A stretch of DNA of 64,000 nucleotides from Blastocystis sp. Blastoise. Lineage: Eukaryota; Protista; Bigyra: Opalinata. The position numbers and the translations under genes are program-made. The notes beneath the pieces are model-generated. The model did no database searches, was not told where the DNA came from, and saw only the letters and a program-made list of their open reading frames with translations. Positions within the stretch are counted from its first letter, which is position 1. Each line of letters begins with the position of its first letter. The stretch is from contig JBBPEB010000009.1 in the NCBI GenBank assembly GCA_039096225.1, forward strand, positions 310,001 through 374,000, read 5' to 3'. Shown in pieces: positions 47,579 through 52,378 of the stretch.

Positions 47579-48658
47579 TTGACCAGACAAAAAGTTGCTC
47601 TTTCAGTATGTCGGTTTCTGGCGACTTTTTTAAACCAGAAAAAAGTTTCCAGTTTTTAGTAATTAAGTCGTATAAGAAACACGGTTATTTTATGTTTTTT
47701 GAGTCACTTAGTGTTTACCTGATAAAATGGTAGCAACTTTTTATATTTAAAAACATATTAGGGTAAAAGAAGACATGAATAAAAGTATTATATATATTTA
47801 TGTATTATAGGAAACTCACATATATTATAAACAGTATAAAATTACATAAATAATATATATTAATTGAGTTACAAAAAAATTTTTTTATTCTTGTGAATAC
47901 AATAAGAATCACTTATATAAAAGTGTTTTTTCTTGGGAAAACAATATTTTTTGAAGATTTTCTTGATGTTATTAAATGAATTATATAATTGTATCCAGAA
48001 AGACTTTAACAATACTGTTTTAAAATTCTATTCTAATTTACTGTTATATATAAAAATAAATTATAAAAAACTATCAAAAAAGCAATTGGAAATCATATTT
48101 GTTTGACAGTATATTATTTAAGCTATTAACTTATTCTAGTCTATTTATAATATAGTTTTAAGCACAGATAAAGATATGAATACTCAAAAACCTACTTATA
48201 AAAAAACAATGGAGACTAATTCTTTAGAAAACGTTATCTCTCCTCAAAGACCTATATGTAAATTAAGAGGACACTCAATTAAAAATGTACAACTAGGTAA
48301 ATTCATACTATTATTTTGTCTTACACATTCATTTTTTTAGATTCAAACGACTTTGTAGTTTCCCCATGTTTAAATCAGTCAGAAAATACTAAAATTCATC
48401 GTAAACCAGGAAGACCTCCAAAAATAAAACGAGGACCAAAACCTAAAAAAGGTAATCAATTAATTCTTTATTTCTTTTTATAAATTTTACTATTTTCATT
48501 TTATATAGAGAACGAAAAAACAATAAACGAAAAAATTGAAAAAAATACTAACAACGAAACTAAAAGTATTTAAAATTATTTTCATTTTCATTTTTATTTT
48601 TATTTTATATAGAGAATAAAAACACTATTACGGCTTTTATTCGAAGAGAACAATTTAA
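47579..48658 (+). repeat. Left terminal inverted repeat (1080 bp)
   Basis: Reverse complement of 51298-52378, from TTGACCAGACAAAAAG to GAACAATTTAA. Confidence 0.95.
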
Positions 48659-48710
48659 AATATATAACCTTTTATTACTTAAATTTCAGATATGCATATG
48701 TAGATATTGA
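48176..48710 (+). CDS. Truncated transposase N-terminus (128 aa, AT-hook) encoded by the left TIR
   Basis: Exons 48176-48296, 48341-48451, 48509-48565 and 48613-48710 with intact GT-AG sites. Contains RKPGRPPK. Diverges from the transposase after REQFK and stops at TGA 48708-48710. Expression unknown. Confidence 0.5.
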
Positions 48711-48724
48711 TATATATTAATTAA

Positions 48725-51700
48725 TTACTTACCTATATTATATTCTTTAAGGAGATTCATCTTTATTGTACTATTGCTATTAAGATATATTAATGTTTGA
48801 TCGAATTCACTTTTTTCTGATATTGACTTTCGTTGAATCCTAAGAAATCGTTTATACTGAGAAAATGATCTTTCAACATATGCTGAAGAACATGGATATT
48901 GACTATATTTTAAACTAATAGCAGAAACATTTGGAAGTGTAGAAAAGTTGGTATAATAGAAATCAATATAACTCTTTCTGGATATACAGTTGTAGTTGTT
49001 ATTATTATTATCACAGAATTCAGCACATTTCTTTTTAAATTCTAATAATTCTTTATATGGAACATGAGAAAAGACTCTCTTTTTTTCCAATTCTGATATA
49101 TCTATTCTATTTACACTGAATGGATTTAAATATGAAGTATCTTCATAAAGTATCATAAACTTTTCCCTTTTGTTATTAGCAGAATTGAAATAATACATAA
49201 GTTTGTTTTGAGCAGATGTTAAGGCTATATAATATATAATAATAATAATAATAATAATAATAATAATAATAATAATAATAATAATAATAATAATAATAAT
49301 AATAATAATAATAATAATAATAATAATAATAATAATAATAATAATAATAATAATAATAATAATAATAATAATAATAATAATAATAATAATAATAATAATA
49401 ATAATAATAATAATAATAATAATAATATCTCAGATAATAATAATAATAATAATAATAATAATAATAATAATAATAATAATAATAATAATAATAATAATAA
49501 TAATAATAATAATAATAATAATAATAATAATAATAATAATAATAATAATAATATCTCAGATAATAATAATAATAATAATAATAATAATAATAATAATAAT
49601 AATAATAATAATAATAATAATAATAATAATAATAATAATAATAATAATAATAATAATAATAATAATAATATCTCAGATAATAATAATAATAATAATAATA
49701 ATAATATATACCATTAATTATTAACATGCTAGTGGTTACATTTTCTAATTGAAAACTGCTAATTAAACTTGATAAAGAAGAATTCAGTTTGTCTACAAGA
49801 ATTTTACTATTACATATGACGTTATTTTCTGATGATGCAATAGTAATAATATCATTAATTTCTACTGATATTGTATTTAAATAAATAAAAGACGATTTAA
49901 GCTTTACTACATATTCATCTGTCAATTCTTTAGAAAATTTTTTAAAATTAGAAACTACATCAGTATTACAAGTAATAAACATGCAAATTGCATCTATATA
50001 GTTCTTATAAAAAGAATAGCACTGAAACCAAGAAGCCCATCTCGTGGGTACAAAAATAGGCCAATAAACAACAGTTGATTGTGAAATAACATTAAATTTC
50101 TTCCATAATAACATAGACCGATAATTGTTTCTTATATTTCTATTACAGAATTCCATGAAATGACTACAATCAGGAAATCCTTTTATAATTTCGTCACCAA
50201 TTAAGTCCAAAATATGACAAATGCACCCAATCCACGTACAATTTTCATTAAGAGTCTCAAATCTATTGGCAATATTCACCATTCCATTACAATTATCAGT
50301 ATTTAAAATAATGACATTCATTATACTTAACTTATATGATAGTAAAGAATCAACAACACACGATGTTATTGTTTGTGATGATTGATTATCTATCTTATAC
50401 ATACCTAAATAAAGCAAATGTAATATTTTTTATTGTAGACTAATGAAAATATGTAATGATAATCAAAGAAAAAGCATAAAATATAATAATAATAATAATA
50501 ATATCTCAGATAATAATAATAATAATAATAATAATAATAATAATAATAATAATAATAATAATAATAATAATAATAATAATAATAATAATAATAATAATAA
50601 TAATAATAATAATAATAATAATAATAATAATAATAATAATAATAATAATAATAATAATAATAATAATAATAATAATAATAATAATAATAATAATAATAAT
50701 AATAATAATAATAATAATAATAATAATAATAATAATAATAATAATAAAAGATGTATACCTAAACAAAAAAATGGCTCATCAATACGAAAACTATTTAATT
50801 TTTTCACCATTATAGATAATACATTTTGTCCTTTTATGTTCTTCGTTTCATCTATTCCTAACGAGATTTCTTGGCCATCAAAATATTCTACTAATCTGTT
50901 ATGATAAATAGATGCTAAGGATGGAACATATTCGTTTACTAATACCGGATATGATGGTAGAATCTTCGCTTCTTCTGGATTGAAATAAAGTTCTTCTCTT
51001 TTCTTACTATTTTTGAATAATGTTAAAGCATGACCCAGTTTAATTGAATTTATGACGGACTGGTAAATATAATAGTCTTTATTAGGCTCATTCGCTCTAT
51101 TATGCTGTTTGTACTTTTTTTCGGCTAATAATTCTTCATACATCATTATAGAACTCTCAACATGATGTTGCGTTTTTAAGTGTTTCTTTAATGATGAACA
51201 TTTAATACTGACATACTTTTTACATGCTTTACATAATAATCTAGTACCTCTACAACATATTGGAAATATAATATGAGGCCAATGTTCATAGACTTTCTTA
51301 AATTGTTCTCTTCGAATAAAAGCCGTAATAGTGTTTTTATTCTCTATATAAAATAAAAATAAAAATGAAAATGAAAATAATTTTAAATACTTTTAGTTTC
51401 GTTGTTAGTATTTTTTTCAATTTTTTCGTTTATTGTTTTTTCGTTCTCTATATAAAATGAAAATAGTAAAATTTATAAAAAGAAATAAAGAATTAATTGA
51501 TTACCTTTTTTAGGTTTTGGTCCTCGTTTTATTTTTGGAGGTCTTCCTGGTTTACGATGAATTTTAGTATTTTCTGACTGATTTAAACATGGGGAAACTA
51601 CAAAGTCGTTTGAATCTAAAAAAAATGAATGTGTAAGACAAAATAATAGTATGAATTTACCTAGTTGTACATTTTTAATTGAGTGTCCTCTTAATTTACA

Positions 51701-51781
51701 TATAGGTCTTTGAGGAGAGATAACGTTTTCTAAAGAATTAGTCTCCATTGTTTTTTTATAAGTAGGTTTTTGAGTATTCAT
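48725..51781 (-). CDS. hAT transposase (CGGBP/DUF659-like), 6 exons, about 688 aa
   Basis: Exons 51781-51661, 51615-51505, 51447-51391, 51343-50759, 50404-49712 and 49224-48725 total 2067 nt in frame. AT-hook; BED-like finger CKAC-x12-HLKTQHH; IDET; TDN; CICH; PTRWASW; PCSSAYVERSFS. Confidence 0.88.
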
Positions 51782-52378
51782 ATCTTTATCTGTGCTTAAA
51801 ACTATATTATAAATAGACTAGAATAAGTTAATAGCTTAAATAATATACTGTCAAACAAATATGATTTCCAATTGCTTTTTTGATAGTTTTTTATAATTTA
51901 TTTTTATATATAACAGTAAATTAGAATAGAATTTTAAAACAGTATTGTTAAAGTCTTTCTGGATACAATTATATAATTCATTTAATAACATCAAGAAAAT
52001 CTTCAAAAAATATTGTTTTCCCAAGAAAAAACACTTTTATATAAGTGATTCTTATTCTATTCACAATAATAAAAAAATTTTTTTGTAACTCAATTAATAT
52101 ATATTATTTATGTAATTTTATACTGTTTATAATATATGTGAGTTTCCTATAATACATAAATATATATAATACTTTTATTCATGTCTTCTTTTACCCTAAT
52201 ATGTTTTTAAATATAAAAAGTTGCTACCATTTTATCAGGTAAACACTAAGTGACTCAAAAAACATAAAATAACCGTGTTTCTTATACGACTTAATTACTA
52301 AAAACTGGAAACTTTTTTCTGGTTTAAAAAAGTCGCCAGAAACCGACATACTGAAAGAGCAACTTTTTGTCTGGTCAA
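51298..52378 (-). repeat. Right terminal inverted repeat (1081 bp) containing transposase upstream region, exons 1-3 and the start of exon 4
   Basis: Mirror of 47579-48658. Confidence 0.95.

Follow-up and report, generated by a model that had tools for sequence, protein, structure and literature searches.

Kilobase inverted repeats holding the predicted promoter and first exons of the transposase in a hAT-type transposon family of Blastocystis

Introduction

Transposons of the hAT superfamily are known to have terminal inverted repeats (TIRs) of 5-27 bp that begin YARNG, and the C-terminal dimerisation domain of their transposase contains the catalytic Glu. Here we analyze a 64,000-nt stretch of DNA (the window) from the tortoise-gut protist Blastocystis sp. 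'Blastoise' (GenBank assembly GCA_039096225.1, contig JBBPEB010000009.1, positions 310,001 to 374,000, forward strand) and describe a 4.8-kb hAT-type element at window positions 47579-52378, here termed element A, in which each TIR is about 1 kb long and includes the 5' region of the transposase gene. Self-regulation of such a long-arm hAT element in this host is put forward as a proposal.

Long TIRs and partial transposase genes have precedents outside the hAT superfamily. The two genes of maize MuDR are transcribed convergently from promoters within its TIRs, and the KP repressor of the P element retains a site-specific THAP DNA-binding domain and a dimerisation motif. Long TIRs of Mutator-like elements (MULEs) carry promoters (PMC3310237), and Mu killer is described as an inverted duplication of the 5' part of mudrA and a TIR, the hairpin RNA of which silences MuDR (PMC3440606). 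Galileo, a foldback-like element of the P superfamily in Drosophila, has TIRs of ~0.76 kb that are 99% identical within a copy and that overlap the 3' end of its open reading frame (ORF) by 69 bp, or by >500 bp in some copies; internal sequence has been recruited into these TIRs, and an insert can pass from one TIR to its partner (PMC4168063). In the literature searched, no hAT element was described with kilobase TIRs that hold a promoter and 5' exons. The Blastocystis genome paper gives total transposon percentages only and never uses the word hAT (PMC10690189).

Element A and its inverted arms

Element A was found by genome search to be single-copy in its exact form. Inverted-repeat detection paired 47578-48658 with 51298-52379, and global alignment of the two arms (1080 and 1081 nt) revealed 2 mismatches and one 1-nt gap, an identity of 99.7%. 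Both substitutions, at arm positions 312 (~47890) and 322 (~47900), fall upstream of the transcribed sequence, and the gap is at arm position 753, within the T-run that closes intron 1. A 1-kb repeat of this identity excludes a chance origin, and the same layout is present in four other genomic copies. The transposase gene is on the minus strand with its ATG at 51781. Its upstream region, 5' untranslated region (5'UTR), exons 1-3 and the start of exon 4 make up the right arm, which stops at 51298, 46 nt inside the predicted zinc-finger exon (exon 4). The TIRs of ~1080 bp and ~99.7% identity that a sequence-only reading of this locus had described, as well as their content (upstream region, exons 1-3 and part of exon 4), are borne out by these results.

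The left arm presents the inverted copy of this 5' region at the 3' side of the transposase gene, where it opens a second reading frame. Its four segments (48176-48296, 48341-48451, 48509-48565 and 48613-48710) add up to 387 nt, or 128 codons plus a TGA at 48708-48710, a length obtained by coordinate arithmetic and not from a joined protein, the exons having been searched singly. Past the arm end at 48658, the frame runs through a unique 17-codon tail that starts at 48660. The same sequence-only reading had proposed a 128-aa ORF that ends at 48710 and is separated from the transposase stop by 14 bp, which the segment arithmetic reproduces, and its structural view of a second, inward-facing AT-hook ORF created by the inverted 5' copy is likewise supported. 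The features of element A are as follows.

47571-47578, no strand: target-site duplication, left copy, ATCGAATT, read from the sequence
47579-48658, plus strand: left long TIR arm, 1080 nt, inverted copy of the transposase 5' region
47579-47645, plus strand: conserved terminal module of ~65 nt, TTGRSYAGA ... TCTGGCG ... AAACCAGA, with its mirror at 52312-52378
48053-48108, plus strand: 5'UTR exon seen in RNA as a spliced contig, followed by a 47-nt GT..AG intron at 48109-48155
48176-48710, plus strand: left-arm truncated ORF, 128 aa, with GRP (AT-hook-like) motif, read from the sequence, introns 1 and 2 supported by RNA
48711-48724, no strand: 14-bp spacer between the convergent stop codons
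48725-49198, minus strand: ORF of the last transposase exon (coding 48728-49198, stop 48725-48727), hAT dimerisation domain, YVERSFS
49236-49700, minus strand: intron 5, filled by an (AAT)n array, boundaries approximate, read-through ORF poly-Tyr
49752-50404, minus strand: exon 5, putative catalytic core with NTDN, WIGCxCH and TRWASW, 3' end approximate
50405-50758, minus strand: intron 4 with a long ATT/AAT array, GT at 50758-50757 and AG before 50404
51343-50759, minus strand: exon 4, BED-like C2H2 finger (CKAC ... HLKTQHH) and putative first catalytic Asp region GIDETKNIKG
51447-51391, minus strand: exon 3, in the right arm
51615-51505, minus strand: exon 2 with the GRP motif, HRKPGRPPKIKRGPKPKK, in the right arm
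51781-51661, minus strand: exon 1, in the right arm
51904-51849, minus strand: mirror of the 5'UTR exon in the right arm, the same contig fitting both arms
51298-52378, minus strand: right long TIR arm, 1081 nt, with upstream region, 5'UTR and intron, exons 1-3 and the exon 4 start
52379-52386, no strand: target-site duplication, right copy, ATCGAATT, read from the sequence

From element A alone the length of the target duplication is ambiguous between 8 and 10 bp; lineage B, described below, fixes it at 8 bp. The first 46 nt of exon 4 (51343-51298) are within the right arm, and the exon is covered by the annotated protein P0007. A motif of the terminus, AAAAAGTTGC, was also found repeated in inverted orientation ~145 nt inside each arm (47733-47742 and 52215-52224), and these inner copies may be candidate subterminal binding sites.

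Long-arm relatives in the same genome

Five long-arm copies, falling into four lineages (A, B, C, and D comprising D1 and D2), were identified in the genome, all with arms of 0.94-1.1 kb. Protein identity among the lineages is 41-55%. The arms of A, B and C are collinear from position 1 yet only ~61% identical, compared to at least 99.7% for the two arms within an element, and this contrast is a signature of concerted evolution. In all lineages the first Cys pair of the zinc finger follows the inner arm boundary within ~150 bp: the boundary is 46 nt inside the finger exon in A and ~85 nt inside it in D, ~10 nt before the acceptor site in C, and at the donor of the preceding exon in B. The 3' arm starts 66 nt (A), 48 nt (C) and ~40 nt (D) past the stop codon. 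One shared inner boundary in four lineages argues for a single ancestral recruitment followed by small shifts and not for four origins. In our view, element A likely belongs, as an autonomous copy, to a low-copy hAT family whose common ancestor recruited the 5' region (promoter, 5'UTR and AT-hook-like exons), inverted, to its 3' end.

The possibility that A is a one-off, all other copies having short TIRs, failed against the arms of B, C, D1 and D2. Further long-TIR copies with different target duplications, which the sequence-only reading had suggested be sought, were found in B (TTAGATAC), D1 (CTGAAATA) and D2 (CTTGAATG). Lineage B (C26:1199194-1222703) has 938-nt arms with 1 mismatch and termini TTGGGTAGAGAAAAAGTTGC; its right arm is split by a 2.7-kb element, and 16.3 kb separate the transposase stop from the 3' arm. 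A Pfam search of the large ORFs inside B gave no match, and these ORFs are of low complexity. Lineage C, on C16, has 1096-nt arms (1 mismatch and 1 gap) with the same terminal module; its unique centre of 2329 nt contains the body of the transposase (annotated protein P0001, 654 aa). Elements D1 (C24:249513-263685) and D2 (C28:360683-401987) have arms of ~1085 nt each, with exons 4 and 6 adjoining the arms. By genome search the four D arms are ~100% alike, and by direct alignment of the D1 left arm with the D2 right arm the first 1081 nt are identical. A degenerate junction pattern returned the expected 8-mers of the D1 and D2 target duplications at the far ends. The near-identity of D1 and D2 at two sites reveals that a long-arm element moved recently and that long-arm elements do transpose.

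The 2.7-kb insert in the right arm of B is a dispersed repeat (C26:1219256-1221984; c26 24257-26985) with a 3-bp duplication, CTA. It shares 94% identity with the start of a ~9.5-kb block in intron 4 of D1 (L043:5639-8336), and a second, partial copy of the repeat is also inside that block. The large blocks within D1 (~9.5 kb) and D2 (~37 kb) start at (AAT)n arrays in transposase introns, and the introns of D1 and D2 that are homologous to intron 5 of A have AAT arrays too. These intronic (AAT)n arrays may be preferred insertion or breakage sites. The arrays at the block starts are as follows.

L043:4198-4759
L043:5603-5638
L042:4236-4372

Another hAT family in the genome is far commoner than the long-arm family, with 18 matches of identical Pfam score, most frames being ~873 aa and two 485 aa (e.g., C3:986533, C13:142363, C22:58602 and C33:190431). 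Two equal-scoring hAT dimerisation-domain matches, C16:41907-42047 (minus strand) and C16:50878-51018 (plus strand), are in opposite orientation 9 kb apart, and this opposed pair (C16:41907-51018) may be another inverted duplication around a transposase.

Assignment to the hAT superfamily

The last exon of element A matched PF05699 (Dimer_Tnp_hAT) at 23.5 bits (cut-off 21.4), and perfect 8-bp target duplications, as is the rule for hAT elements, were found at A, B, D1 and D2. Alignment of the four lineages revealed invariant D36 (the Asp in N(T/S)D), C60/C62/H63 (WIGCxCH) and T120-R121-W122 (TRWxSW) in a first block (A1), and an invariant Y(V/L)ER..S, including E109, in a second (A2). These D, CxxH, RW and E columns, which we take to match the hAT catalytic blocks, are intact in every lineage. 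Taken together, the PF05699 match, the 8-bp duplication and the invariant motifs identify A as a hAT element that is predicted to be autonomous.

Other profiles gave lower scores. Lineage C reached only 12.6 bits against PF05699 (cut-off 21.4), and a DUF659 match in exon 5 of A was weak (E=0.039). The zf-BED profile scored 17.2 bits in lineage C, under the 20.6 cut-off, and had no match in A; a CxxC...HxxxxH pattern is readable in every lineage. The termini of A are TTGACCAGAC... and those of the family TTGRSYAGA, not YARNG, and the arms are 938-1096 nt, not 5-27 bp; short YARNG-starting TIRs are a usual rather than a defining feature of the superfamily. A full HMMER scan with the annotated relative P0001 returned 182 proteins at E<=1e-3. 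Among those from other genomes even the best do not exceed 25% identity, and the ones with names, from sea urchin and stick insect, are uncharacterised. Family proteins from the genome itself are named in NCBI as belonging to Blastocystis sp. 'Blastoise'. Protein homology searches with P0001 and P0007 retrieved nothing beyond the queries themselves, and a search for contigs encoding P0001 found none.

The terminal module and short inverted intervals

When the termini of A, B, C and D were aligned with a solo end on C15, only the first ~65 nt of the arm were found to be conserved between lineages. A genome-wide search with the pattern of this module gave 22 matches, compared to 0 in the control: the 10 ends of the five copies, 2 solo ends (C15:1320997 and C28:427777) and 10 in five inverted pairs. 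The pairs are ~1.26 kb apart, and the spacer sequences differ between the two ends.

C1:116529/117784, inverted module pair
C2:617193/618448, inverted module pair
C3:1389912/1391167, inverted module pair
C4:1829167/1830424, inverted module pair
C29:269748/271003, inverted module pair

These five intervals of ~1.3 kb are probably a non-autonomous relative with ordinary, non-identical ends, in which case the long arm would be dispensable for mobility. The ~65-nt module is likely the functional TIR and the predicted transposase-binding end. The solo end on C15 (L041:4960-5070; C15:1320959-1321069) is 1.6 kb from the contig end, with no transposase exons behind it.

Expression

RNA from one public run (X1, of a single 2023 study) was available as contigs and was compared with window positions 47300-49200. 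A 378-nt contig (word depth 9.5) covers 48053-48108, 48156-48293, 48338-48449 and 48507-48555 and ends in sequencing adapter. By this approach three GT..AG introns are skipped: the 5'UTR intron, intron 1 and intron 2. The transcribed parts of the arms differ only at the intronic indel, and the contig therefore fits either arm equally. Thus, the arm exons are transcribed and spliced, the arm of origin is unassignable, and the 5'UTR intron is an addition to the gene model of the sequence-only reading. In this small data set no X1 contig lies over 48580-49200, which includes the unique tail of the left-arm ORF (48659-48710) and the last exon of the transposase.

Protein P0007 (171 aa, WA158_000529) continues into the zinc finger and is therefore the product of the right-arm gene, with exon 3 skipped. 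A word search with P0007 found no second protein with the same N-terminus and hence no left-arm product, a weak negative. Exon 3 is in the RNA contig yet skipped in P0007, so splicing may be alternative. Exon 3 and the end of its upstream intron (48472-48628; mirror 51328-51484) resemble a 104-bp tandem duplication of the intron 3/exon 4 junction, with 74% identity over 53 nt. A Piwi-domain gene is present in the genome.

Beside element A, in the stretch 47300-47518, is a gene for a signal-peptide surface protein; the left end of the element is 61 bp upstream of the ATG of this gene (47518, minus strand), so that the promoter of the gene is necessarily inside those 61 bp or inside the transposon arm. 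This gene is under a 4.7-kb RNA contig with ~18x the word depth of the transposase contig.

A palindrome centred on the lineage C element

The lineage C element is at the centre (~C16:1501653-1503981) of a palindrome, C16:1458500-1547105 (loci L046-L054), the two arms of which are 99.9% identical over at least 43 kb. The symmetry crosses the transposon termini into host DNA. Each palindrome arm is shorter than ~250 kb, since kinase genes at C16:1753-1758 kb are without a mirror partner. Insertion of the element at the centre of an older palindrome was considered and rejected: the outer 8 nt, TTATTAAA, are not self-complementary, and there is no target duplication. The structure is what would be expected if a break beside the element left an end that folded back at the 1.1-kb inverted repeat and then primed copying of the flanking DNA. 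Inverted repeats are established sites of palindrome formation in yeast and mammalian cells, and a palindrome of this type could also come from alternative transposition of hAT ends, which has been described for maize Ac. An assembly error, although possible, seems unlikely, as the contig runs on into unique sequence on both sides. If real, the palindrome ties a transposon inverted repeat to large-scale genome instability in a gut protist.

Origin and upkeep of the arms

Under ancestral recruitment of the 5' region, gene conversion between the arms would keep them alike while the inner boundary shifted slightly, and the transposase would need only the conserved ~65-nt terminal module. The predicted promoter inside the arm would give each element two inward-facing promoters. 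Firing of the left promoter would yield a transcript antisense to the transposase 3' end together with the 128-aa fragment, and such a transcript might dampen expression as a side effect and not as a proven function. Several points weigh against this account. Gene conversion is something we infer from the identity pattern alone, and the assembly of A rests on its matching target duplication and the recurrence of the layout, not on DNA reads. No lineage has lost the arm beyond the 65-nt module, which leaves room for a selected function. The case for an 'ancestral' origin comes from paralogous lineages of a single genome, with no relatives found outside it. Mobilisation of the ~1.3-kb intervals by the long-arm family is an assumption.

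Alternatively, each round of transposition or repair might rebuild the second arm on the template of the first through fold-back priming, with no need for gene conversion. Arms that are nearly perfect in 5/5 copies would fit such rebuilding, and the flanks of the lineage C element, mirror-identical over at least 43 kb and without a target duplication, are what fold-back copying would give; the palindrome, however, can be a one-off accident of a broken end. The target duplications of A, B, D1 and D2 are normal, the 2.7-kb insert in the right arm of B is missing from its left arm, and hAT transposition is a cut-and-paste of both ends. We thus regard fold-back rebuilding as improbable. More improbable still is that element A reflects a one-off rearrangement or an artefact of assembly. 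The genome paper lists the Russian-tortoise isolate Rus-B with 33.3 Mb and 23.1% G+C, a size that the present genome matches, and describes assembly of R9 Nanopore reads by Flye --meta followed by polishing, with a diploid k-mer signal (PMC10690189); an assembly of this kind would leave room for such an error. By contrast, each of four elements, at separate loci, has a matching pair of 8-bp target duplications, lineages that are just 41-55% identical in protein have the layout in common, and a 1-kb repeat is well below Nanopore read length, all of which weigh against an artefact.

Possible self-regulation

In an alternative view, which builds on the two-part regulatory system suggested by the sequence-only reading, the arms are kept as a two-part brake, in which the 128-aa AT-hook fragment would compete for the DNA of the element and convergent or hairpin RNA would feed silencing. 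The layout has been kept across four lineages that diverged to 41-55% protein identity, each lineage has 1-2 copies compared to the 18 equal-scoring matches of the other hAT family (most ~873 aa), the ORFs end 14 bp apart, a Piwi-domain gene is in the genome, and maize Mu killer offers a precedent for silencing by hairpin RNA from an inverted duplication of the transposase 5' part (PMC3440606). Against these stand the expression results, in which no RNA was assigned to the left arm, no contig covered 48580-49200 and the proteins searched included no left-arm product. The arm also stops before the zinc finger in all lineages, giving a fragment without sequence-specific binding or a dimerisation domain, a genome of 77% A+T would titrate out a lone GRP motif, and the C-terminus of the fragment varies (the C arm ending ~10 nt before the acceptor and the B arm at the splice donor). 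We find the two-part brake as a whole doubtful.

Its halves differ in strength. The protein half, a truncated repressor, looks weak because the fragment is without zinc finger and dimerisation domain, its C-terminus is unconserved and a lone GRP motif should bind AT-rich DNA anywhere. The antisense half is plausible from the layout: with stop codons 14 bp apart, any left-arm transcript would have to overlap the transposase 3' end, and a transposase mRNA that reads through would in addition include antisense sequence to its own 5' part. Copy number, the Piwi gene and the layout are compatible with self-limitation by double-stranded RNA. A bolder version, to which we give only about as much credence as to the brake, perhaps slightly more, would treat the kilobase arms as a selected self-limiting module: head-on promoters in every element would, through read-through or convergent transcription, generate double-stranded RNA against the element's own transposase and hold each lineage to 1-2 copies over a very long time, and the repeat would sometimes seed huge palindromes. 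If true, this would be a built-in 'Mu killer' within the normal form of a hAT element, with C16 as the example of a palindrome. The reading we prefer is still that of an ancestrally recruited 5' region, with any dampening as a side effect.

Comparison with known systems

Element A and its relatives are similar to KP and the 66-kDa repressors of the P element in that a transposable element encodes an N-terminal fragment of its transposase; the predicted 128-aa product of A differs in having neither a zinc finger nor a dimerisation domain. In MuDR the TIR promoters drive two different full genes, whereas the left arm of A would drive a truncated ORF. The inverted duplication of the transposase 5' region that marks Mu killer is present in A; Mu killer, however, is a rearranged derivative at a separate locus, whereas the Blastocystis layout is the normal form of every element.

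With Galileo the family shares kilobase TIRs that are near-identical within a copy and have recruited internal, coding sequence. The recruited parts differ, being the 3' end of the ORF in Galileo and the promoter and 5' exons in Blastocystis, and while TIR length varies widely in Galileo, the Blastocystis boundary stays near one point in four old lineages. The superfamilies differ as well (a THAP-type P transposase compared to a hAT-type one), so that the likeness is one of TIR behaviour and not of membership.

For annotation, such arms generate spurious truncated genes and multi-mapping RNA reads. The family also provides a natural experiment on the end sequences that a transposase requires (a 65-nt module or 1-kb arms) and on whether head-on promoters restrain a transposon. 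Compared to the hAT superfamily (Ac, hobo, Hermes, Tol2 and Buster), the 8-bp target duplication and the C-terminal hAT dimerisation domain are the same, and a predicted zinc finger followed by a putative RNase-H-like core with CxxH and RW motifs would be a further likeness. The differences are the inverted repeat of 0.94-1.1 kb, which includes promoter and 5' coding exons, and the termini, TTGRSYAG. Thus, the Blastocystis family adds to the superfamily an inherited, mobile form in which kilobase TIRs hold the element's own predicted promoter and first exons and evolve in concert across old lineages.

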